Shown here piece by piece: positions 3,087 to 57,100 of a stretch of DNA of 64,000 nucleotides. The notes under the pieces are model-generated. The model had not been told where the DNA came from and did no database searches. It saw nothing but the letters and a program-made list of their open reading frames with translations. Made by a program: the position numbers and the translations under genes. The stretch is from Amoebophrya sp. A120 (lineage: Eukaryota; Protista; Dinoflagellata), in NCBI GenBank assembly GCA_905178155.1, contig CAJINV010000002.1:5761709-5825708 (forward strand), read 5' to 3'. The first letter of the stretch is position 1. Every line of letters begins with the position of its first letter.

Positions 3087-5828
3087 ATGAACGCAATTTT
3101 TGGCTGCATTGGCCGTCGGGGGGAAAGAGCAGAACTGCGCGGAGTTTTCAAGAACCTACAGCAGGACCACATGGCACCAGGGCATCGAACATCGGGACGT
3201 CGCGAGGAGCGAGAAGAAATGGTTCGAAATAGTAGACCCAGTTCTTGTTCTTCTTCTTGTTCCTCCCACCGCCGCCGGTCGCTCGTCTTCTCCCACCTGG
3301 CCGTATTTATTTGTTTCGGCTGCACGACAGCTCCAGTTCAAGTTCATGTTCAGCTCAGCCGTTTCTTCCTAATTTCGGCGGAAGCGGCGAGAGCAGGTGC
3401 GCAGCTAGTACAAGAGCAGGAGAACCAGCAGCAGCAGCCGCCCTTGCCCACCGGCGCCACACGGTCCACAGCGGGATGGAAGGCGAAGAAACAACGCGAA
3501 ATATTGCGAGGAAAAATCCCCCCTCCCCATATCGAAAAGGCGTGTTTCCGAAAATTTGTCTTGCTGATTTGAGACCACAAATCACGTCTGTCCTGCAAGA
3601 AGACAACTCCACAGGCTCTGCCGCATTATGCAGGCGGTTTGTGATGCTGTTGGACCTACAGCGTAGCCGTTTCTCATGCTAAGCGCCTAGGCCAAAAGCT
3701 CTCTACTCAGGCTCGGCAGGAGCCTGCAGACCTCTACTGCAGGACAAGCCTGATTTGTATACGCAAATCCAGCGTCAGAAGCTTCCTTTTCTTTGATATG
3801 GGGGGGGATTTTTCATTGGGATACGAAATCGACACCATGTGTATGGCCAGCATGATGGGAATCATGGACGGCCCACTGCACGAGCAGAAGGTCGGGACGA
3901 CGAGTGATTTTTCTGCAGCGGCGGAAGTACTAGATCAAGAGGAGGAGCACGATCCAGAGAAGATTCTCGCTGCGAAAAAAAGCATCCTTGCCAAGCACGC
4001 CACGAAGTATTTCTACGACCACAACTTGCTCAGTACCACTAGGAACATCGCGAACAGTACGTCTAAAAGTACATCTTTTTCTCGGCACAGTACTATGCGG
4101 GAGGAAGTACTAGAGGCTTTCAGCACGGACGAGGTGGAAACGTACGAGAAGCGGTGTTTGCGGGAAAGCAGCGGCAAGGGGAAAAAGAAGGAAGATTCTT
4201 TTCCTCCGCCGGAGGATGCGGTGTACTACCTGATCGATAACAACCTGGACCCCAGCTCGAACCCGGACTCCGATTCCGCCCGACAGGGCCAAAGCTGGAA
4301 GGTGTATTTCGAGCTCGAGGAAGCATACAAGAACAGCGAGAAATATTCCACCTCTATGGCGGCCCAGCGCCTGCGCGCCCTGCGGTGGGACAAGATGAAG
4401 CGCAAGGTGCTGCAGATCGCGGTCTTCAATCTGTACCGAAGGAAAGACGCCGTGTATCTCTTGCTCGCAAGTCCCTGGCTGAGCAGTTCGAGGTACGAGT
4501 ACAGAATTACCGCGAGCCGCCCGGAAAGGAGTCGTCGTGTGACTGGAATTGGTCAAGACGAGCTGGTTGACTGGCGGTCGCGGTTGTTTCCGACGAAGGC
4601 GCAAATGAAAAAAATGCGGGAGACGGATCATTACATGCAGGGACGAACAACAAGCGCGAAAACAAATCTCCTTGACGAATATCTGGCCCAGCACGTGTCC
4701 AAGGTACAGACGACGGAGCAGGAGCGGGAGCAGACGTGCTTCGACTTGCGGGACTGGTTTGTTCTCAATGATGTTGATAATGATGAACAATTTATTCAGG
4801 AGGGGGCTCTTGCTAACGAAGAGCGCCGACCTGGTTCTCGTCGAAAAACGACGACGAGAATTTCTTACTCCTGCCTGCTGCCGAACAAGCAGAACCGCTT
4901 GCACCTGCTTTTGTTTTTCATCGAGACCGCGAGCCAGAGCGAGCTGGACTTGTTTTTCTACCAGGTGTTAGAAGAGGGTATGATGGTTGAAGAAGAGAGA
5001 CTCGTCGACCACAGCCCGCTGTACCACTTTTACCTGGACCTGCAGAACGTGTCGCCCAGGTCTATGAATCAAGCCTCGGATCTGATGCTGTCCGGTTGGA
5101 AGCACTTGGCCAAGAAGCGCGCCGCGCAAGCGTATCTGGACCAAGTGTTCCGGAACGAGTATAATAGAGACGTCTTGCAGCACGACAAAGCTCTTGCCGG
5201 CAAAGCGTTTGACTTGGTTATCATCACCGACGGCACGCTGGTACCGTGGACCTACAGCTGGAGAAAGGCCATCCAAATCTTGAACTTCTCCGGTATGCAG
5301 GACAGCACCCCGCCTTCGGAGAAGGAAGCCATGGCGATGGACGACTTCGCCTTCGCGAAAACCGGCCGCGGTACTACTGATGCAGGCTCTGGAGCAGGAG
5401 CAACAAGATCCTTTTTGCAGCAGCTACAGCCTGGCGGAGATCATGCTCTAGAAGATGAAGAGCAACTACAGCCTAGAAAGAACATTAGCATGGTTCCGCA
5501 GTTGCCCCAGAGTAACAACTATGTGCACACGACCTTCGTGCTGCTGGATCTAGGTTACCTGTCGGAGCGATTTGAGAAAGTGGACCCAGACAACATGGAA
5601 GCGGACCACCCACAGCGCCCCCGCACGCCGACGGAGGAGTTCCACCGCTGGCGGATGGAGGCGGTGCAGAAGGTGCAAGAGAATTTTGACATCCTGAGCC
5701 CCCAGCAGCGCGACGATGAGCGCCTGATTCAGCTGCGACACGTGCCGCTCACCTCGCGGCTGGAGCACTTCTATCGCAAGAAAAAACTGTTTCACTCACA
5801 AGCAGAAAATGGAACACAGAGCTATTAA
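3087..5828 (+). CDS. Hypothetical protein interrupted by an introner; may be the 5' part of the next gene
   Basis: ORF 3087 (..KKQRE) joins ORF 3798 (IDTMCMAS..) in frame after removing 3502-3828. A possible further exon at about 5954-6151 could link it to the 6386 gene. Start uncertain. Confidence 0.6.
3502..3823. mobile_element. Family A introner (322 bp), TSD CGAAA
   Basis: TIRs TATTGCGAGGAAAAATCCCCCCTCCCCATATC and GATATGGGGGGGGATTTTTCATTGGGATA. CGAAA at 3497-3501 and 3824-3828. Removing 327 nt keeps the frame. Confidence 0.95.
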
Positions 5829-6385: not shown

Positions 6386-9300
6386 GGATACCCGAAGATC
6401 GAGGCATTTGCGGCCACGGACGACCAGGTTTGGCGCAGCGTGCTGCTGCCGATCACACAACTCGAGCGCGATTTCTTGGCAGATGCGGACACTAAGAAGG
6501 ATCCAGCTGAAATCGCTAGGGCCAGGACGACCGAGTTCTTAGAGCACCGGTTTAGCATGGACGGGTTGATTCAACTCGCCGAGCACGAGCGGACGCACCT
6601 GGTTTTCGCCGAGTTTCCGTTCGAAAAGCTGAAGCAGTGCGCGGAGCGCGGTCGCGGCTTTTTGGAAGGTGGTATCAAAAGGAAAAATTACCCCTTCCCA
6701 TACTGACAAGGTACGTTTTCGAAAATTTGTGTTGCTGATTTGTGACCCCAAATCGTCTCTGTGATGCATGAAGGCAACTCCACAGGCTCCGCTGCATTCT
6801 ACAGGCGGTCTGTCATGCTCATGCTCCTACAGCGTAGACGTCTGTCATGCTAAGCGCCCAGGCCAAAACCTGCCTTCTCAGGCTTGGCATGGGCCTGCAG
6901 TCCTTGCCAGCAAGACACATCTGATTGGTGTACGCAGATCCACCATCAGAAACTTCGTTTTGATATGGGGAGGGGGGATGTTTCATTTTGATAGGTGGGG
7001 GCAAGAGTGCGACAAGTATAACCTCAACCTCGTCGCAACGAAACATTTCGCGGCGGAAGGAACTGGACGTGGCCAGCAGTCTCTTTTATACGCTTCCCAT
7101 GCACGTGGCGCGGATGGCCGGGATGTTCAAAGTGCCAAACGACTTCACCCACCACAGCTGGCAGGCGGACTACGTGGAAACGGTGCTCCGTAACCTGTGG
7201 GACCAGCTGGATAGCATGCTGCCCATCCCGCCGAGTTGCGACTACAGCGCGGGTATCGGCCAGGACTACCCCGGGAACGATCTGAACCTCTATCAAATGG
7301 AAAAATCCCCCCACCCCATATCGAAAACGAAATTTGTGATGCTGTATTTGAGTACACAAATCGAATTGCAATGCTAGAAGGCCAAGAGCCGCAGTTGTGG
7401 CCTCGTTTGCAGGCAATTTGTCATGCTGTTTCCCACTTGCAGTTGCTTCCTGTCATGCTGAAGATGCAAGGCTTTCCCACGCCACCCAGCACTACAGTCC
7501 GCATCTTTTCCCTTCTAGCATGGCAAAGCTGATCTGTGACTGCAAATCTGCATCACAGATTTCCGTTTTGATATGGGGAGGGGGGATTTTTCTTCTTGAT
7601 AACCTCGGGCGCGTCCTTATCCTGGCAAACAGCACGTTCTCCCAGTGCCTCGCGCTCTGCGCGGAGTTCTTTGAGGGCGAGCGCGACAAGGTATCCACCG
7701 AATTTGACGCGTTGGGAAACGAAGGGAAGCACAGCAACACGTGCTGGGGAGTGACCTTCATGGCAAATGCGGACGAAGTCGACGTTCCTGCTAGAAGAAG
7801 TACCACAGCGGAGCAAACAAGTACGAAGGCGAGGACAATGCCTGCGTGGGTGGAAAAGTTAGGGTACCCGGGAAATGATAATGCGAATAAAAAACTGTCG
7901 GAAAAAGAACTACCAGGTCGTGCAAGAACAGGTGAGAAGCAAAACCACGCGGCAAAAACCATACAGGGTACGTGTTCCTTGAAAGCGAAGCAGCTCCCTG
8001 TAGGCATCTCGGCCCGCGCAGGTCCGTACCAAAATCCCACCGCCGTTTCGCTCGTGATGACGAGACGCTGTCAGCAAGATATGTTCACCAACCGGGAGGC
8101 CCTGCTCGAGCGCATGCGCACCCTGATCTGGCGTGAACAGGGAAGAAAATCCGACTTGCAGAAACGGCGGTTCTTTCTGCACTACACCGCGGTCACGGAG
8201 TTTCTAGATCCCAGGCGCGGTCGTGGTCGTCGTTCTCCACCACATGTGGGCGTTAAAAATCTACTTCCAGAAGAAGAACACGTCGAATCAAGAAATGTTG
8301 GCCCGACGATGTGTTTCGACACGCGAGGCGAGGGCAAGCCGACGCCCGAGGTGGCTCTGAGTTTTCTGCACATGCACCAAATCGAGGTGGACGGGATGTT
8401 GAAGGCCGGCGACGTCGCTATTGGCGCGGAAATGAAGTTGCAAGAAGATCAAGAACCAGCCCACCGAGACAGCCTGCGTGATGACGTCGAAGTGGACCCG
8501 GAGCACTGGCACAAGACGCATGTTCGCCCCCCGCGAACGGACCTCCTGGGGCCCCCGAAAGAAGAATCTTTGCCTCCGCCTGAGGTTGACACAGCAGCGG
8601 GGGCTGCAGCTGGAGCTCCTCCTCCCCTTCCGCAGGAAGTTTCACCTGCAGAGCGGGCCCCATCACAACTGCCTGCGCCGGTAGTTGAAGTGCCGCCCGA
8701 AGAAGACGAGGAGGAGGAGCTCGAGGAGGACGTGGAAGTGGTGCCCGCTGTTGAACTCACTAGTACAATGCGTCCGCCGCAAGAAGATAAATTTCCTCTT
8801 GCAACCACACCTACATCAACTCCGGAAATGGAAGAGATACAATCGCCAGAAGCTTTGCCACCAGCAGAGTCAGCAACAGATGAACAGCAGGTCCAGGAGC
8901 CCGCTAAAGTAGCAGAAGCTTTACCTCCCACATCGAAGCCTGGGGCCGAAAAGAACATTCGTGATAGTACTTTGCAGCAAGATAAGGTTCATCGTCGAGC
9001 CCCGACCTCCGTTTCCGCTTCTACTGCGACGCTACCACCTAGTAGCACCAGTCCCACTTCTACTTCTTATTCGTCCACTTCTAGTCCTAGCACGTCTACC
9101 TCCCCCACCTCGACCAAGCGCGAGTGTACGGAAAAGGAGCGCATCATTTTCGGCCCGGATTGCGACTGGGATGAAGAAGACGAGATGGACGCGGGCCGGG
9201 TGGCGACCACGGAGGGACTTTCCGAGGCGGAAACGGAGATTCTGGATCCGGAGAAAACGGGGAATTTCAGCAAGGCCGACCTGATGCTGGCGGAAAACGC

Positions 9301-12300
9301 GGGCGAAATCCAGGCAGACACGCGCGGCGACGCTTTATTGATCCACAAAGATTGGCGAGTGGACGAGAATGCGAGGAAGAAGTTCGAAGAATTGCGCAAG
9401 AAGTGGCAGCGGGAGGAGGCGCAGCAGAGACAAATGGACGAGATTGAGGAGGTGCGACGAAGAGCGGAGGAGGAGGAACGCGAGAAGAGGAGGCAGAGGG
9501 ACGCGGAATTGAAAAAAAAGGCAGAAGAGTTGGATAAAACAAGCAGCACAAAAGCTCCAGCGGGTGAAGAAGATGTTGAGACCACTAAGTCTCCTTCTGG
9601 AGGGGACGATAAGCATGATCAAAGTCAGGACAAAAATGCTGACGAAGGAGGGGAACAAACAGAAAAGCCTGCAACAGGAGGAGAGACGAGCGAAGATGAG
9701 TCCACTACATCCACTACTTCGACTACTTTTCCGCTAGACACCCCGGAGAAGGACGAGACTTCCGGCGAACAAGACGACAAAGGCGAAGAACAGGGTGGCG
9801 GAGGTACTGGCTTTGCGCCAACGGTGGAAGATGATGCCTCCCTAGGCCCTCGTCCGGAGTGCAAGTCCATCGAGGAGTATCTAGAACCGGACTGTGTGCT
9901 GTCGGAGGAAGCGAGGAAAGATCTAGACAAAATCGGCAGCACTAATATTTTGACGGACAAGGATATGGATCTGTCAGGATTGAAATCGTCAAAGTTGAAA
10001 TAATTTGTCATGCATAAAATGGTCGGACATGCATGCATTTCCTGGATGTCCTTGGTCGGACATTCCTGTTTGGTGGTAGTATGGACCCCGTGTGGCTGTA
10101 GCGTCTTCCTCCGCCCTGCTTAGGCTGCCGCGCCTCGTGAGTTTCGTGTAATCGTTGTCCATTTTGCAAACCGTGCAATTGGTATATCCACACTTGCTCT
10201 TCGTAGTACTTCGTCCGTTGACCTTCCCCTCTACTCCCTTTACGTTTCCCCAGGCAGTACTCTTCATCTAAGCTGATCTTACCTGTTTTACGAATTTACT
10301 TTGAGTTAGCCTCTCATTACTTTCTCCCTTATCTTATGTCTTTCCTCAGAAGTGCGTTGGCGCGCCCTGCTTTTCTGCATGCACCATCAGAAGTGCATTG
10401 AATCGCGGCGGGATAATTACGAAAAAAATTTCCTCTTTGCATCGACTCTTGGTGGGATAATTACGAAAAAAATTTCCTCTTTGCATCGCGGCGGGATAAT
10501 TACGAAAAGTCTTTCACTTTGCATCGACTCTTGGTGGCTGCTTCCCACCGGCGGAGAGTATAAAGATGTAAAACATGAGCTGTTGACCACTGGGTCGCCG
10601 CAGCGTAGTGCTTGCACGCACCATCAGAAGTGCGTTAGCACGCCTTGCTTTTCTTGCGCACACCATCAGAAGTGTGTTGAATCGCGAGCGTATGATGATG
10701 ATGATGATTTCCTAGTTTCCAGGATATGTCTCACATATCTTGCTTTTCCTGCTTTCCCTGCATGACAAACCACGTTTTCGGTATGACTGTATGTGTAGCT
10801 TCTAGTTGTTTGTCATGCTGATTTTCGATAGATGGTTCTTTTTCTATTGCTCTGTCGCGTGACGCGTATCTCCTGATGCGCGTCACGGTTTCGGACGGTG
10901 CCGGTGTGGCTGATTACCATCTCTCCCCCGGTGCCCTATGCATGTGGCCGCCCTTCCTAATGATAAAAACTGCTATTTGCATTATATGCTCGCCAAATTT
11001 TCATATCGATACTACCACTATCCGACTCTCTGTCGTCCCGCACTTACTTTAGATAGAAAAATTTTATTGGTTTACGTAACCGGGGGCGGTGTGTCGTCTG
11101 CGGCGGATGATGACAGTGTACGCATTCAAAGAACTTCATGGCTTTTGGGGCTGCTTCCCCTTAGGTCTAGTATCACTTGACCCAAGGCACTGATCCGCTA
11201 AACGCACACCGTACGCCTCGCCCGCTCGGGGATAGCGTATCTCTAGACAGTGCTCTTGCTGCGGAGTGCTCGGCGATTCGCGCCGTACTTAATTCTACTG
11301 CGCGTAAGTCTTTCACTTTGCGTGGACTCTTGGTGGCTGCTACCACCGCGGGAGAGTATAAAGATGTAAAACATGAGCCATTAGCCACTGGGCTGCGGTG
11401 GCGTAGTGCATGCACGCACCATCAGAAGTGCGTTTGCACGCCTTGCTTTTCTTGCATGCACCATCAGAAGTGCATTGAATCGCGAGCGTATGATGATGAT
11501 GATTCCTACAGCACTTCGTATTTGCCTGCCGTTTACTCTCCTATGGTAACTTGACCTTCTATTTCCTCTCTCTACTCTTGTTTGGGTTTCGTTGTGACGG
11601 AAAGTATAGTCTTTGCACAGCAACGTGAATCCGATTTACTTGCTGCTGCTGTGTATGTTTTGTATGACATGCTACCAAGTATGTCTTTGCCTTTCGTGAA
11701 AATGTGTGATGATTTGTATGGTTGCCTGCGCTTCGTTGCTACTGCACTTCCTTCGTTAGTACCTGTTTCCTCGTATGGAGCTAGATCGCAAATTCGTACG
11801 CTCCTCATTCCGAAAAGTCCGATCTTCCCTGCCTTCCCCTCATGCCCACGTAGATGTAGGTCGCTACCCTTTTACTTCCTCTCTGCCGTGTAGTTTTGTC
11901 TTCTTATTTGTTTCATCCTTGTACTAGCGCTAGTTCGCGGAACCCGCTTCCTCGCAGGGGCAGCTGTTTTTTTTTCCGCCTTGCCAGCGGGTTTGTTTGG
12001 GGGGATACGACAGTATCGGCGTCGGGGGAAATCGCCGATGGGATACGACCGCAGTGTGACAAGCCAGGCGGGGAAAATAGTGAAGCTTCGGGTCTCGCAG
12101 CTCCACTTCTCCGTCTTACTTCCGTCTTCGTCCAGCTTCCTCTTCTTTCTTCTTCCGCCTTTTTCCGCTGGGGTTCGTCTTTGCATGACATCGAGGGACT
12201 AAGGGCGTAATAGCTTAACTTTATTGGTTTACGTAACCGGGGGCGGTGTGTCGTCTGCGGCGGATGATGACAGTGTACGCATTCAATGAACTTCATGGCT

Positions 12301-15300
12301 TTTGGGGCTGCTTCCCCTTAGGTCTAGTATCACCTGACCCAAGGCACTGATCCGCTAAACGCACACCGTACGCCTCGCCCGCTCGGGGATAGCGTATCTC
12401 TAGACAGTGTCCTTGCTGCGGGGTGCTCGGCGATTCGCGCCGTACATAGTTTTGCGGTGCGTGAGTTTTAGACTTTGCATCGACTCTTGGTGGCTGCTTC
12501 CCACCGCGTGAGAGTATAAAGATGTAAAACATGAGCTGTTGGCCATTGGGTCGCCGCAGCGTAGTGCTTGCGCGCACCATCAGAAGTGCGTTAGCACGCC
12601 TTGCTTTTCTTGCGCACACCATCAGAAGTGTGTTGAATCGCGAGCGTATGATGATGATGATTCCTTTATTGGTTTTAGTAGGGCGTGATGCCAACGGGGA
12701 CGGACAGCCCTTAGAACTCCGATTTCATGCATAAAATGCAAGGCATAAAGTTCCTTTTCTTGCGCAGATGGCAAGCGAGGCAGATTGTGAGCCTATTTAG
12801 GGTTTGGGATAGAGCAGCTAAAGAAGCACGACAAAAGCAGTCTTCTGTGCCCAAACAGCATGACAAATTGGATTCCGGTGCTCCGAAGATTTGTCATGCG
12901 CCGCTTGGAAATTGGTCTTCCAACTGGTATCCATTTTATGCATGACAAATCATTTCAACTTTGACGATTTCAATCCTGACGCTTCCATAAAGGAACGCGA
13001 ACGCCTGGATCCGGACGACGAGGGTGTTTTCCGCAAGCTGAAGCTGATCGGTCTGTACAAACGGGGACTCATCACCCGGAAACGGCTGGACTACTTGCTG
13101 CTCAACTGCAAATTTGTTCCTCCAGACGAGCGGGATAGATTGTTCCCCGATCGTCCCGATCTATTTGCGTCGAAAGAGGATCAGAACACGACCACAGCCG
13201 AGCCACCACTGGTGCGGGAGCCACGGGCGGAGAGAAGTTCTTCTTCAAACACAGGAGACGGAAAGCTCACGACTAGATCCGACAAAACAACGACCGAAGA
13301 GTTGTCCTGTTTCGGCGGCATCTGGATGTGGTTCATTCTGTCTGGCTTGATTATCGCGGGCACGTTGCTGCTAGCCTGCGTGTGCTGCCGGTTGGGGCCT
13401 TGGAAGTCGGGCGAGGCGGAGATCGACCTGCTTCTGCTGAATTTGCACGAAGGAGGTAAAAAGCCTCCTCCGGGCGGCACAACCACGGGAACGAAAGGTC
13501 AGGACGACCTGGAGCGCGGCCCGTCCCCGTCGAACCAAGCGGAGCTGCGAGCTGAGGGCTTGGAGAACTTCGGGCCTGCTTTCGGGGGCGCAGAGATCCC
13601 GGACATTCAGCTGTCGGCAAAGAAGAAAAAAGCGAAGGCAAAAGCCAAGAGAAAGAAGAAGGGGGTCGGATTTGCGGATGTGGGAGACGGGGATGACGAG
13701 GAGGACAACGAGGACGGCGCGGGAGACAATTCCGACGATCAGAATCAGTTTCTCGGGGTGGAAACCGCGATCCGGGATGACTCGCGGGACACTGCGCAGG
13801 CGGACGGGAAGGTGGGGGTGCTGGAAAACTTCCAGTATGGCGGCGAGGTGGTGAAAAAGCCGAAAAGAGCCAAGGACTTGGCGGCAGAAAACCTGCTGGG
13901 CCAGTTTGAAACGGCCACTGCGGCGGACGGTACGGTGGGAAAGCTGGAGGGGTTTGAGAAGGGTGGCGAAGTGCGAAAGAAACCGAAATTGCCGAGCTTG
14001 GGCGTCGAGAACGTGACCTCTTTGCACGCGAACCGATATGAAATTCTTGAGGTTGCAAAAATAGAAAATCCTTTTTTGGTCTCCGCGGTTTTGGAGAGGA
14101 ATGTTGCGACCACGTATGGAGTTGTAATTTGGGAGCGTTGTTTCTATTTGAACAGTTTGACTTTAAGTTTCATGCTGTAGTTAGGCATTTACCGGAGCCT
14201 CCGAATGGAGCCTTTTAACAGGTCCAATGGATTTAGAAATTTTGAATTTGCAACCTGCATAATGGAAGCGAGGAGGGCAAAATCGAAAACGTTGGGGTCC
14301 TAATCGGGTTCGAGAAGGGTGGTGAGGTCCGGAAGAAACCGAAAGCGCCGGACCTCGGCGTGGAAGACGCGGGCCCAACCGAGGTTCTATTGGACGGCAA
14401 AACCGAGAACGTGGGGGTCCTGATTGGCTTCGAGAAAGCAGGAGTTGCGAAAGTGAAAAAGAAGAAAGATGACAATAAACATCCGTCGCAGTATGATAAA
14501 GCGACGGACAGTCACTCCGATCCACACCGCGATGACCACAACTTGGATCCGACGTTGGACCAATTTTCCGCGGCGAAAGATGACGGCACGTCGCTAGGAG
14601 TAACAGTCGAGTACGTCAAGGAAAAGCATGATGCTTTCTTCAATCGGAACCCGCGACACTTCCTATTACAGTGAAAAGTGCCCCCCACCCCTGACATTGC
14701 AAAAGTTTGTGATGCGAAGTTTCCAAATGAAAACTTTTTGTCATGCATGAAAGGAGCATGAATCTTTCTGATGCAGAGCCTCGGCGTGTATCGCATCGCT
14801 TGCATGACAAGCGCCGCCCTTGCTGGGATCTTTTGCAATACAAATCTTTGCTATTCACGATTGGAAATCTGTGATGCTGATAGATGCAAGAGAGCGAGTG
14901 CTTCTTTTGGAAAGAGTTGCAATGCAAATGCTTTCAAGTTGAGGGGTGGGGGCATTTTTCATTGTAATACTTCCGGGCCGGCGAGGGCGTGGCGACCAGT
15001 CCAGCTCCGGTCGCCGGATATCATGTGGAAAAGTATCGTACTCGTCATACTGTTACTGATTGAGATTGGCATCATGCATGACTACCTTATTCAGCATAAT
15101 GAATTTTTGCAGTCGATTTACAAACATACACTAGTACGATGATTGTGCCATGCATACCGGAATGGGGCCAGTGATTCCCCTATCAAATGAGAATGTGTGT
15201 GGGTATGGAAGAGTGCAAGACTTGTCATGCAGGGCCTAGTACGACAGATTTGATTGACTCTGCGAGGTTTTCTGATGCCCATCCTGTATGCGAAACTTCT

Positions 15301-41990: not shown

Positions 41991-44900
41991 ATGACGACGC
42001 CAACAAATAACACTTCCGCCACCGCCGCCATGGAGGAAACCGAAGCGCAGGCCGCCCAGCTCGACGAGGAGATGCGGGAAAAGCAGCAGCGCATCCGCGC
42101 ATTTGCGCGCCACGATTCCATGGACCGCAACCGCATGGAGGAACTGTCGCAAACCGTGTCCGATAGGGACTTGAACAAGAGTCAGATGAACACGAGCGAC
42201 GGCGATCGACACAGCGAGAGAGATCTTCACGACAACTCGCTGACTGTGCATGATCAGGAGCCGCCAGATCTGACGAAGCTTCCGTTGGAAGAACGGCGAA
42301 TCAGCATGGGCAGCGACAACGAGCTTGTGCGGGACTTCCACGAAAAGGTAGGCCGAAGGGGCACACCTGGCTACTACCACTCCATGTCCTCGGTTGGGCA
42401 AATCCTGTACGGCTCCAGCCCCTCCTCCCCGAGCGTGTTCCCGCGGTTGTCGAATTTTCTCAGCGCTCTGACCACGCGGCCGCGCGCAACTTCGATCGTC
42501 TCCTCGGTCGCAACGCCTGTGAACGGGAAGGGCGGCGACATTGCCGTGATGGAAACCGTGGAGCAAAACGTTTCGGTTTTGCCGATGAGCAAAGGCACGA
42601 CGATGTTGACGAGCGGCGGGGAGATGAGAACTAGTACAACCAGTAGCGCGCCGCCCGCTGGGATGAATAGAGTTCGATCTGCGCCGGCATCTACTTCTTC
42701 CAAGAAGAAAGCACACGATGACGATCTGATCGGGAAGAATTTGCTGCTTACTGCGGTAGGAGACGTCTCAAACAAACCTACTGATGCGGATCGGAAAACC
42801 ACATCACAGACCATCGCTAAGATGCAGCTCCCAGCGACGTTTATTGCAGGAGCTCCTTCTTCAGACGGAAACAGCATGATTCCGGGGGCCGTGAATCAAA
42901 ATATGATCAAACGAGACGACAAGGATATTCTCAACGCCGTTCCCTCCGCCCCGACTATTTTGGTGAATGGCTCAGAGTACCACACGACCCAGCAGCAAGA
43001 AGATGACGTCAAAGACAATTCAGTGGTCGTCAATGTCGGGGATTCTTCAGATGGTAACCCTACAACTTTCAGCAACATGCAACTCAACAAAAACACCAAG
43101 TCTCTCTCCTCCGATCTCAAAACACACGTCGAGACAGCCTCCGTTCGTTCGAAAAACACGCTTCTGTCCGCACCACAGAGCGGATCTGGCACGACAGCAG
43201 GAAACACGAATTCTGATGCCAATAAATTCTCGACCTCCACGACCAGCAATCGGCTCTCCGCGATTACGAACCGATCGAGCATGGTTTCCGTGACTAGCAC
43301 CACTTTAGGTAGGTTGGAGAACTTGGTGACCACGTTTTTGGGTTCGATGAATTTTGGAACACAACGGCGGGACAGTGGAAACCGGAAGTCGTCGCGATTT
43401 GGTAAAAATGGTGCAGCTCTCGACTGCGTTTTGGAGGATGATAGCTACGGGGAACCACGACAAATAATACCTGGACTGGAAAGGAGAAACGAATTGGAAG
43501 ACGCCGGCTTAGCAGCTGCTCCATTGAAGGAAAATCTAGACAGGCAAGACGAAGACTTCCTTGCAGGCACAACAAATCCGTCAAGCGGAAATAAACAAAC
43601 CAATGCCAAACCGAACATTCACGCTCGCCAATCCGCCGCGTTACACCGCAGCTACAAAGCCACGCGACAAAGTTCCTGGCTGGCGCTATTGCCGCAGACG
43701 AGATCCTGGGTCAAGATGAAGTTCGACAACAGTTGGCAAAGGTCCACAACTTTGTCGCAGGACTTTGACCTACCGGAAGGGCTGCAAAATAACGGAGTAG
43801 GCGATAGGAGCAATAAGTCCTCGCCCCGAGACGACGGATCGGGGTCAAGGTCCGGGCGTAGCTTCGGCTTTTTCTCAAGAGCGACGAGGAAAGACCGGGA
43901 TTCGTTCCTTCAGTCCACTTCCACAGCGTTAAGCTACAACGCGAAGTTTTTCTGCGTCAATTGCGCGCCGGTGATTTACTTGCTCAAATCTCTGTTCCAC
44001 ATGTTCATGAACTTTCTGCAAAAGCTCGTCTACTTCCTCTGCAGCTACGAAACCGAGCAGGAATTGTTAAAATGGCAGGCGTGGTGGGAGAAGACGTTTC
44101 GGCGCTGGTACGAAAACGTGGAGAAAACGAGTGAGCACACCGTGCATAAAGAGAAGCTGTTGCATATGGAAGCGTCAGGATTGAAATCGTCAAAGTTGAA
44201 ATAACTTGTAATGCATAAAATCGATACCAGTTGGAAGCCCAATTTCTAAGTGGTGCATGACAAATTTTCCGAGCACCGGAATCCAATCTGTCATGCTGTT
44301 TGGGCACAGACGACTGCTTTTGTCATGCTACTTTAACGGCTCTACTTCAAACCCTAAACAGGCCGCCAGTCGGCTTCACTTGCCATCCCGGCAAGACAGG
44401 CAATTCATGCCTTGCATTTTATGCATGCCAAATCATTTCAACATTGTCGATTTCAAACCTGACGCTTCGATATTGCACTCCCTCAGGTCGGAGATCTACG
44501 ACAGCAAGACCCGATACAGCATTTACGACGTGTTTGAGCCGGTGACGATTTCGCAGTCACAGTATTCGACATCGTATTCAAAAAAAAAATACCATCGCAA
44601 TCACTTTTGCACAATACAAAAATTTTCGTCATGCGCAAAAATGCATCACAGTCAAGAGTCATAGGCGATTTCCCTTTGTATTTTTGCAATACAAGAAAAA
44701 TTTGTCATGCGGGGCAAACTTCTGATGCAAAACCTCCTAAATGTGATTGTGATGGTGTTTTTTTCTAGGATACATCGTCCTCTTCGAGTACTAACAAAAA
44801 CGGTTCAAATCGGAACAACAGAAACAGCAAAGCTGCGAACAACGGAAATAAAGGTAGCAATGTCCGTTCCGGCCAGTCCGTGGCCTCCGGTGCCCGTTCG

Positions 44901-54134: not shown

Positions 54135-57100
54135 ATGACGTGGGCCACGCGCGGCGGGTCGTCGAGTAGCTCCGCGCCGGGAGGAAGTGCTACCGCTGCC
54201 ACTGCTTCTAGTGCACGTTGTAGCGCAATGAAGTCTAGTGCATCTGGAAACACCAGGATACGGAAGTTTCTCTTTCTCCTTCCGTCCGCAACCACAACCG
54301 CCATTCAGCTTCATGACACGGCCGAAATTAAGCAGACCACAACTAGTAGCATGGTGCACTCCAAGCTCGCCGCCGCAGCACTGAAAGAAAAGGAGATCCA
54401 AAGGGGGAAACGGAAAGAGCGACTGTCCAAGGCAGCCGTTTCCTTGCACCAGCATCACCAGTCTGGCGGCGCAACTAGTACTAAAGAAACTTCTTCATCT
54501 GCGGCTGCAATCTATTCCAAGCATGCCAGCAGTGCGGGGGGAAAGACAAAGAAGGGGGAAAAGCAGACGAAAATGTTTTTCACCTTCATAGGCGATCCAA
54601 ACCCCTTCGACCAAGACGACCAACTTTTTCCCAAAGCCTGCTACCCGGAGATCACCGAAGCGGCGGTGCGGTGCTGCAAAGCAAACAAGAACGAGACGGA
54701 CAAAGTTATGATGGAGGATTTGCGGGACTTGTCGGGCAGGCGGGGAGGCAACGACGATAAATTTTGCAACGGGCAAGGTAAATGCAAATTGAGATTTTGT
54801 TTGGCTTCCATTTGTTTCCACTCAACAACTTTTAGCCGGTTCTTCTGCCACTGATGTTAGTGGTCGCACATCAAGCATCAGAGAATTAGAAGCAGTACCT
54901 TCCACCTGAAGAGCAACAGAGGGAAATTTGACAAATCGTCCACGTTTTCTGCACCACAGGCGAATGGGTCGACGGCACGCAGGTAGCCGACTTGAAGGGT
55001 CTCACCCAAGCCGAGGCGATGCAAATTTGCTCCAACGCCGGCGCGCGTCTGTGTGATTTCGAGGAGCTACGCGCCGACAAGACTGCGGGGACTGGGTGCC
55101 AGTTTGACGATCACAACATTTGGAGCAACACCGAGTGCTACGAAGAAGGAGTGTACGTCAACAACTGGCTCACGATCGAGGGTATGGATGAGATGAAAAG
55201 TAGAGAGCACCTCGTCGTGTAATGTTACCTCGATCTGCATGAGGAGTTGAGTTCACATGGAAGTAGCACTTCAAACTTGTCATGCGCTAGCTGCACGCAT
55301 ATTGTGTAAAAATGCGCGCATTCTGACAACGTTGTACTACACGGGGATGCACTCCGACTTTTCTCATCGATACAAGAAATCAGACTCTCCGATCCAAGAT
55401 TCATGAACGACGCGAACAAAAACGTGAGTTTTTTGCTGCTGCTTTAGCTTATTTTCACTTCTATGTACTGCCGACGGATGCAAATAGATTTAGATTTTGT
55501 GATGCGAAACTGACTCGTACCAATGAAACAACTCAGGTGATGATGGCCGCTGCATTCAACTGGACCTACCCCTTGACGGCAGAGGCAGAAAATATGGGAG
55601 TGTCAGAATTGAAATCGTCAAAGTTGAAGTGATTTGTCATGCATAAAATTCGACGCAAAAAGTGCCTCTATTGCAGAGGACGCACGGAAGGCAGATTATA
55701 GTCCCGGCAAGGGTCAAAAGTTGGACTGCTGACTAGCATGACAGAAGGCAGCGCTTTTGCCCTAAACCGCATGACAGACTCGCTTCCAAGTCCGGGAAAA
55801 TTTGCCATGCACCGACTACAAGCAACAAACAAGTCGTGACTGATTGTGCACAGTAGTGTAGTGCTTTATTATAGAATAGCATTTATAGACGTATAGGGTG
55901 AATAGGTAGTCGTTACAACGAAAAAGCAAACACTATATGCGATTAGTTCTGCGCTCTCATGATGATAAGTGCACGCTATCACTCGGTACGTCTTTCGTGT
56001 GAATGCGTTGAACTACGTCAATCACTCCACTGAGATTCCGTTGAACTACCTTCGTTGCACGACCCACAACGTTTAAGTAGATGCTGCATTTCTCTTCGCG
56101 CGTGCCCGGCCCTCGACGCATGACCTCTGCTGCTTTGCTCTGATTGACCTGCTGGTTCCAATCGCTTGGGTGGATGTCTTGTTGCGGTTGGCCTGCTGGC
56201 TCCAACCTGTTTTTTGCTTTGCACTTCCTTGTTTTTCAGCAGCTTGTCTGCTGGCAGACGGTAAAGAGATTATCCTACAGTGGTGAGCATGCACCCTCGG
56301 GCGCTGTAGGTTTGGTCATCTTTCTCTTTACGCGAGCACCTACCCTGCTTCTGTACTTTTTGTGGTATGTTGGCCCATACCAGTACAGTTTTCGGTCGGG
56401 TAGGACCCCGGGTGGCGGTAGTCTGCTTCTTGTCTTGATTTTTTGCTGCTGCTGGGCTGCTCTGCTTGCGCGCCTTTCCCTTCTTCGATGCTGCTCTCGT
56501 TTTCCTCGTACTTGACCAGCGGATAGAAGTGTACCAATTCGTTGCTCTACCCACTAAAGCCCAATCGTGACCATGCCCGTAGGAACTACTTTATTAATGT
56601 CTCTACGACTTTTGACTTCAATCTTAACCTTCACATGTATTCCTACCTAACTTGTGTTGTTATTTTTTGTTTTTTCTCTGTACGACTACGATTGGCCAAA
56701 GCGCCACCGGGACAGCCTGCCCGTAGATCACCGATGCCATGCACCGACTACAAACTGTAGGCGTAACTGGTATCCGTTCTATGCATGACAAACTATTTCG
56801 ACTTTGACGATTTCAAACCTGACGCATCCATAGAAAAATGCACCAAGGGGTGGAACCCGACACCAGAAAGTTTAAACGAAACGCACTACGGAATCATGTG
56901 GGACAGACTAGCCCGTGTGAGCAGGGTACAGATGATCTGATGCAAATGTAAGGGCGATTGTCTGTTTTTTTCCGTCGATGCGCGAGAATCTTTAAGATGT
57001 AGCTCCACTGTTTTTGAATGTTGCTCGTCCAATCGATAGGCGTAAATGCTTGTTCAAAAGGACGTAGCTACCGCCTCGTGCTCGTCCATCACCCCCCCTT

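Follow-up and report, generated by a model that had tools for sequence, protein, structure and literature searches.

Putative non-autonomous retroposons nested at a short conserved motif inside introners of Amoebophrya sp. A120

In the present work, we describe two DNA segments of Amoebophrya sp. A120, insert 1 and insert 2, that are each nested inside an introner (a transposon-derived intron) and that we consider putative members of one retroposon superfamily. Both lie in a stretch of 64,000 nt (C2:5761709-5825708, in an assembly of 115.5 Mb), referred to here as the window, and positions without a contig name are those of the window. Host introner 1 (9964-12989, + strand) resembles a miniature inverted-repeat transposable element (MITE), with terminal inverted repeats (TIRs) of 59 nt at 9964-10022 and 12931-12989 that are 93% complementary, and is bordered by a 5-bp target duplication, AAGGA, with the left copy at 9959-9963 (+) and the right copy at 12990-12994. 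The introner plus one AAGGA copy makes up an intron of 3031 nt whose borders are not GT-AG. The host gene, an orphan gene, has two large exons (8522-9961 and 12996-14177), neither with a Pfam match; it agrees with a published remark on the preference of non-canonical introns for poorly conserved genes. Insert 1 (10022-12722, +) is a non-coding composite of 2701 nt whose limit is given by the 3' base shared across copies; its sense strand is the + strand and is pyrimidine-rich (AT skew of about -0.27). It is preceded by TGTCATGCATAAAATG (10006-10021, +), which consists of the target motif plus 8 nt and was delimited by paralogue alignment, and followed by TTTCATGCATAAAATG (12723-12738, +), delimited by repeat comparison. 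These two 16-nt segments differ by one mismatch, at base 2, and are exact over 14 nt.

Insert 2 (55822-56734, +), a putative retroposon of 913 nt from the subfamily ending in ...CACCGA, is found inside host introner 2 (55593-56832, +), which belongs to the same family as host introner 1 and is bordered by a GAAAA duplication (55588-55592 and 56833-56837). It is flanked by a 19-nt duplication, TGCCATGCACCGACTACAA, with the upstream copy at 55803-55821 (+) and the downstream copy at 56735-56753. An uninterrupted introner of the same family, bordered by a TTGCA duplication (44165-44472, - strand), served as the empty-site reference. Alignment of the two host introners, minus their inserts, with this paralogue (44161-44480) showed that the 16-nt and 19-nt segments are extra copies of the target sequence, each present in one introner only, which identifies them as true target-site duplications that arose on insertion. 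The 3' terminus of insert 1 (GGGACGGACAGCCCTTAGAACTCCGA, 12697-12722) and that of insert 2 (GGGACAGCCTGCCCGTAGATCACCGA, 56709-56734) are identical at 20 of 26 positions by direct count, and both adjoin TG(T/C)CATGC. An initial annotation, made from the sequence of the window, had put forward the 16-bp duplication with 14 bp exact, the terminal match of 20 in 26 and the junction of both inserts at the same offset of TG(T/C)CATGC; all three were borne out in the sequence, the duplication by the empty-paralogue alignment as well. It had also limited the similarity between the inserts to the 26-bp end, which holds for the end itself but not for the extent, since the similarity covers about 50 nt, comprising two small hairpins and the end. 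A weak block, GGACCCCG(T/G)GTGGC(T/G)GTAG, was seen at 10083-10101 in the head of insert 1 and at 56403-56421 inside insert 2 (17/19, E 0.47). Apart from the tail and this block, the two inserts are unrelated. Within the window, the terminal pattern has only these two copies, against 0 expected.

Reads and contigs of four sequencing runs were placed on positions 9300-13400. In a 1129-nt contig from run X3, position 9958 is directly followed by 12990, so that 3031 nt are missing, with a 5-nt ambiguity that is the AAGGA repeat; the exons are covered in this run and the insert hardly at all. The reading frame continues across the skip (...GAC AAG G|AA CGC GAA...). The joint between 9958 and 12990 is absent from DNA run X1, in which insert sequences are present. 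The 3031-nt junction that had been predicted for complementary DNA (cDNA) is thus seen in a contig from what is probably an RNA run and is missing from a DNA run; the message probably loses the introner, a single duplication copy and the nested 2.7 kb together.

Copies of the same terminal structure were compared across the genome; the comparison covers 64 of its loci, two loci from metagenomes and tables of coordinates. Genome-wide, the tail pattern was matched 68 times, against 0 for the reversed control, and the pattern of tail plus motif 84 times against 1. The motif TGTVATGC is directly 3' of 64 of the 68 tails (at most one mismatch in the 19-mer), and at each of the 37 distinct sequenced junctions ...CC(G/A)A runs directly into the first T of TGT(C/G/A)ATGC, which deviates there in no more than 2 of its 8 bases. 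The 5' ends are graded. When insert 2 was used as query, 12 other copies were found, all ending at 913, with starts in the family at 1, 13, 88, 355, 362, 380, 487, 507, 720, 732, 739 and 834; one of them is 99% identical, which points to recent activity. Copies found with insert 1 start at 1033, 1387, 1561, 2117, 2199 and 2467, with a range extending to 2569, and all end at 2702. Inserts are between 23 nt (no more than the tail) and 2.7 kb long, the shortest copies having 23-25 nt. An upstream duplicate is clear in 14 copies; it has 15-23 bp, with a mode of 16, and starts at the first T of the motif, and in these 14 clean copies the target sequence preceding the start of the duplication is (G)AAAWTY. 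Target-primed reverse transcription is known to leave this footprint, in which the 3' junction is fixed, the 5' truncation is graded and the duplications, all starting from one nick, vary in length. To our knowledge, no DNA transposition mechanism gives a footprint with a fixed 3' and a graded 5' end. The flanks, on which the initial annotation had made its interpretation depend, are therefore not random, with TGTVATGC following 64 of 68 tails, and its reading of target-primed reverse transcription is upheld by the fixed 3' end, the arbitrary 5' truncation and the 15-23 bp duplications from one nucleotide.

Some tails are paired at a distance of 11-13 kb (C18:1358516/1369838, C20:589728/602661 and C4:9103881/9115536), and a 30-kb cluster of tails with identical scores is present at C6:3814929-3845077. 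These pairs and clusters are probably segmental duplications carrying copies, with independent insertions slightly overcounted.

The target motif is abundant in this genome: WWYTGTSATGC has 59,388 sites genome-wide against 457 in the control, and WWYTGTAATGC has 22,021 against 113. The window holds 33 motif sites where 0.74 are expected, distributed 22:11 between the + and - strands, and each introner of several families holds several copies, in both orientations. The insertions were at first attributed to targeting of a single introner family, "family B", an attribution that has to be given up: several introner families carry the motif, and specificity is for the motif, hence for introners of many families. 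As for the location of the copies, the expectation that they lie in introners was confirmed, as the 3' flank of about 30 of the 37 insertion sites is a dispersed repeat common to other sites or to introners of the window, and 18 of the 37 are bracketed by typical introner inverted repeats (e.g. CTTCCAGACCCAGACATTTTTGCA). The few sites without introner context include the most degenerate motifs. An intronic location may benefit the copies as a "safe harbour". With respect to the host gene, voting by the length of open reading frames (ORFs) gave 11 copies in sense, 1 in antisense and 27 unclear, and purine skew gave 22 in sense and 7 in antisense. An additional orientation bias of the copies was considered and is not shown by these numbers, the 22:7 ratio being in line with the 2:1 strand bias of the motif itself in the window.

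The copies differ widely in the rest of their sequence, and at least six unrelated bodies have only the last ~50 nt, the tail, in common. In insert 1, the tail (12664-12722, +) comprises a conserved lead-in, a small hairpin of variable sequence, GGGAC-N8-GCCC and TAGAACTCCGA, and is the only part common to all subfamilies. Its general layout is a T-rich lead-in, a variable hairpin, the invariant GGGAC-N8-GCCC and TAGA-N-C-N-CC-R-A. The first hairpin varies in sequence and keeps a stem of 3-4 bp (GGC/GCC, GCC/GGC, UGGC/GCCA and GGCU/AGCC), a covariation described from single-sequence folds and unscored; RNAalifold on a sequence-based tail alignment recovers the invariant GGG/CCC stem only, and MAFFT misaligns the first hairpin. 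Structured tails serve as RNA signals read by the reverse transcriptase (RT) in stringent pairs of long and short interspersed nuclear elements (LINEs and SINEs), and the tail described here may likewise be a recognition signal for an RT.

Upstream of the tail, insert 1 is modular. A "head" module (10032-10344, +) is shared with short elements of ~330-350 nt that consist of head, spacer and tail (copies on C6, C18, C16, C20 and C4). An internal unit of ~450 nt (11053-11503, +) is repeated at 12210-12661 and partly at 10508-10705, so that insert 1 contains three copies of a 200-450-nt unit, and in other copies the unit plus the tail constitutes an element of ~520 nt. Because 5'-truncated copies keep the order of the modules, insert 1 must have been inserted as one piece. 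A mosaic segment of 644 nt (11582-12225, +), delimited by its identity to dispersed copies, is 100% identical over its 644 nt in a C9 copy, two further copies match it perfectly over 470 nt or more, and the 400 nt that lie 3' of it are 63-94% identical in dispersed copies (L002, L003/L017 and L004). On the 3' side, perfect identity ends at a different point in each copy. The identical segment could stem from template switching between RNAs or from gene conversion.

A second family, designated M (L006:1152-2590, L007:85-2591 and L008, with the 3' end at 2445), has a tail ending in ...GGGACGCCCTGCCCTTAGTTTCCCAA and has the GGGAC...GCCC-TAG core in common with the copies described above, called family 1 where the two are compared. 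In the genome, 50 of 51 family M copies are followed by CATGAC(A)(A/C), against 1 in the control (eight free positions after the tail). The family adjoins CATGACAA, the other-strand reading of the introner motif described above, and its joint with the target falls between motif positions 7 and 8. Duplications of 11 and 22 nt flank the copies of 1438 and 2507 nt, and the third copy is 5'-truncated. Positions 11613-11990 of insert 1 are 84% like the family M body, and insert 1 is therefore partly a chimera.

A scan of metagenome contigs with tail plus motif returned two contigs, both of assembly JACKZZ01. In one of them, an introner of ~150 nt contains a copy of 160 nt flanked by the 13-nt duplication TGTCATGCAGATT; this contig is syntenic with C4:1636390-1643788 at 86-95% identity. 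The A120 genome has neither introner nor nested copy at this C4 locus (query 3184-3506; the flanks overlap by 9 nt), and it also lacks a 147-nt introner of JACKZZ01 (L065:2687-2833 compared with C4:1639610-1639614; the flanks overlap by 5 nt), the family of which is very abundant, with dozens of matches at 91-95%. The orthologous C4 site is an independent empty site, and the nested copy in JACKZZ01 shows that the system exists in a relative that has diverged by ~10%.

Taken together, it is highly probable that inserts 1 and 2 belong to a superfamily of non-autonomous retroposons that are LINE-dependent and SINE-like, without a recognisable RNA polymerase III (Pol III) head. In the mechanism that we propose, an RNA with the conserved ~50-nt 3' tail would be bound by an RT supplied in trans, and the bottom strand would be nicked in a sequence-specific manner between ...AAWTY and TGTSATGC, that is, at one of ~59,000 sites located mostly in transposon-derived introns. 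The freed 3'-OH would serve as primer for cDNA synthesis, which would begin at the final base of the tail, and an early stop of synthesis would give the 5'-truncated copies. A cut of the top strand ~16 bp downstream would then produce duplications of 15-23 bp starting at T1 of the motif. With the motif inside an introner, the composite would leave the pre-mRNA with the intron, and the host frame would remain intact.

Insert 1 has no ORF with a Pfam match, and Rfam gave zero matches over 9900-13000 at E<=1, with no hammerhead. The presence of an RT and an endonuclease in the copies, which the initial annotation had suggested looking for, did not materialise: there is no Pfam-matching ORF and no RT or apurinic/apyrimidinic (AP) endonuclease within 10 kb upstream (GIY-YIG was not searched genome-wide). 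No RT or AP-endonuclease hit adjoins the family M tails by eye, and a weak AP-endonuclease-like match in a 1621-aa frame (C2:7978646-7979128) carries none of the tails searched. With no coding capacity and no RT near any tail, the copies are therefore non-autonomous.

Several results weigh against retroposition with the help of a partner LINE. None of the 106 RT hits (PF00078) lies within 10 kb upstream of the 88 tails, none was seen by eye to be downstream-adjacent to the 110 tail-profile hits, and none of the 43 AP-endonuclease hits (PF03372) was seen by eye to adjoin a tail-profile match; a LINE partner would be expected to have the same tail, and no RT-bearing element with it was found. 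Run X3 is RNA by guess only, which is why its contig is called a probable cDNA here. The raw RNA runs X9 and X10, which have the same species label, have zero reads on this stretch and are uninformative, and no transcript of the element with a definite 3' terminus was detected. The junctions between insert and introner are unbridged by Illumina-derived DNA contigs, among the contigs listed, and the assembly at this one locus therefore rests on internal logic, not on reads. Finally, a segment with 100% identity beside diverged tails, as seen at 11582-12225, is predicted neither by simple master-copy retroposition nor by uniform decay.

The subfamilies of copies differ in the fourth base of the motif at which they are found, and this bears on how the target is chosen. 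Tails ending in CACCGA, CACCAA or AACTCCGA are at TGTCATGC in 35 of 36 cases, and tails ending in (C/T)CTCCGA are at TGTGATGC (n=24) or TGTAATGC (n=5) and never at C, so that tail subfamily discriminates C from G/A (Fisher p 1e-17). The "G" subfamily uses A sites and the "C" subfamily never does (p 0.014). C, G and A sites number ~41,600, ~17,800 and 22,021, the C/G split being estimated among the matches listed (100 of 59,388). In insert 2, both copies of the duplication read the variant TGCCATGC, and the motif therefore comes from the target. Two readings fit the discrimination of base 4, namely separate partner enzymes or annealing of a read-through 3' extension. It is possible, though we hold it doubtful, that RNA-DNA annealing, and not protein alone, contributes to the choice of target: transcripts would run on from a donor copy into the motif downstream of it, this 3' extension would pair with the nicked bottom strand of a new motif, and each subfamily would inherit the motif variant of its master copy; this would refine retroposition, not replace it. 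The table of subfamilies and base 4 is what such annealing would give, despite all three variants being abundant, although separate partner enzymes with different specificities would give the same table, and its counts, taken from exact and one-mismatch junctions of tail and motif, include some segmental duplicates and are slightly inflated. Tolerance of A by G-type copies and never by C-type copies is expected from an rG.dT wobble, and the site of insert 2, TGCCATGC, is compatible with an rU.dG wobble, but the copy L035 is at TCTGATG in both copies of its duplication, which is not wobble-compatible, and a read-through RNA was not observed. As a tentative extension, to be taken with equal reserve, the introner motif might be an RNA-guided landing pad, with lineages locked to C or to G(+A), on which unrelated non-coding RNAs and a second family form a nested-parasite ecosystem.

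An unlikely alternative is that there is no dedicated endonuclease and that priming takes place on nicks made by another enzyme, such as one that moves the introners and recognises their repeated motif. In several introner families no feature is repeated more often than the motif, family M uses the other strand of it for priming, 7 bp away, and no endonuclease or RT gene accompanies any copy, all of which would suit a borrowed nick, as would the report that A120 is without transposase (PMC7789003). Nevertheless, one staggered cut would be expected to give duplications of 7 bp, and those observed have 15-23 bp in family 1 and 11-22 bp in family M; a single staggered cut serving both families is ruled out by these lengths. 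The strict choice between C and G would also need a discriminating step, and endonuclease-independent insertion, as in L1 biology, usually occurs without regular duplications. We consider it very improbable that the inserts reflect a DNA-level event (a DNA transposon, a Helitron or a variable introner interior) or an assembly artefact. The host is DNA-transposon-like, the insert is a mosaic of repeats and its junctions are unspanned by short-read contigs, among the contigs listed; against this, the insert has no TIRs of its own, the duplications vary in length with one end of the element fixed and the other graded, both paralogous and orthologous empty sites exist, and the same junction is found in more than 80 places and in an independent assembly. 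Helitrons, in addition, make no duplications, insert between A and T and have a 3' hairpin followed by a CTRR end; a Helitron origin is ruled out by the duplications of 15-23 bp, and the element ends in CCGA adjoining TGT.

Retroposition at a fixed motif has counterparts in known systems. Site-specific non-LTR (long terminal repeat) elements, such as R2, R1, Tx1, NeSL/CRE and Utopia, insert by target-primed reverse transcription at one exact nucleotide of a multicopy target, as proposed here, and Tx1L of Xenopus inserts into a DNA-transposon-like element. Transposons have been listed among the known targets of site-specific non-LTR elements (Kojima and Jurka, PMC4640811), and site-specific insertion in lineages of the R2/R1/Tx1 type is read as avoiding damage to single-copy genes. 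Unlike in those lineages, the target here is a motif of 8-12 nt with ~60,000-80,000 copies in spliced transposon-derived introns, the copies are all non-coding, with no RT or endonuclease sequence by which to place them in a clade, and the subfamilies are selective at one base of the motif.

SINEs and LINE-dependent retroposons, including the members of stringent LINE/SINE pairs and R2-derived short internally deleted elements (SIDEs), are short and non-coding and have a common structured 3' tail, 5' truncation and duplications. The elements described here are SINE-like in their diverse bodies, common structured tail, 5' truncation and duplications. However, they reach 2.7 kb and are mosaic, and the head that SINEs derive from a Pol III-transcribed RNA gene with an internal promoter has no counterpart here, no tRNA-, 7SL-, 5S- or snRNA-like head being found (Rfam, 9900-13000). 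SINEs share their 3' tail with a partner LINE; here the tail is conserved across at least six bodies, and no RT-bearing element with it was found. Penelope-like elements encode a GIY-YIG endonuclease and an RT, and their terminal repeats often contain hammerhead ribozymes; no hammerhead or other Rfam match and no Pfam-matching ORF was found here (GIY-YIG was not searched genome-wide), and the internal direct repeats of insert 1 are only loosely pseudo-LTR-like.

The host introners match those described for Amoebophrya (PMC7789003) in their inverted repeats, direct repeats of 3-5 nt, non-canonical borders and removal from the transcript. In contrast, the nested insert makes no intron of its own and has a different insertion chemistry. 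Farhat et al. 2021 (PMC7789003) restricted their analysis to introns of 40-1000 bp, and nested composites are therefore outside that set. Gozashti et al. 2025 (PMC12130899) assigned part of the A120 introners to non-LTR or LTR elements and described as puzzling an element with copia/gypsy ORFs between TIRs; retroelements nested in TIR introners might be behind these "retroelement" introners. Homing endonuclease genes in self-splicing introns and inteins are likewise removed at the RNA level and near-harmless, a comparison drawn in PMC4640811, but they spread by DNA homing instead of retroposition, whereas here splicing is spliceosomal or introner-specific and the intron is itself a separate mobile element. 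Full-text searches of the literature found no paper that combines introners with nested or site-specific retroposons. The principle is known, and a target class with removal by splicing, together with discrimination of a single base by subfamilies, appears to be undescribed.

The usual view of site-specific retroelements is that of parasites whose survival depends on redundant targets. If retroposition into introners is correct, the redundant target is a mobile element that the cell removes from RNA, which adds a new class of target. The cost of an insertion in a gene should be near zero, and the supply of targets, in the tens of thousands, would be almost unlimited. The motif would be the handle by which the nicking enzyme recognises introners, and that enzyme, once found, would be a natural DNA writer at a defined short sequence and may bear on how the introners of Amoebophrya move and are recognised. 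The discrimination of one base by subfamilies offers an experimental entry to the encoding of target choice.

Two of the loci examined show a further feature. Complete dinoflagellate spliced-leader sequences (CCGTAGCCATTTTGGCTCAAG) are found directly ahead of repeats at L015:370-390 (+) and in L039 (-, at 1747 of the reverse complement), and in L015 the sequence after the spliced leader is 87% like window positions 11926-12005, which suggests that the spliced-leader loci are retrocopies of trans-spliced RNAs.

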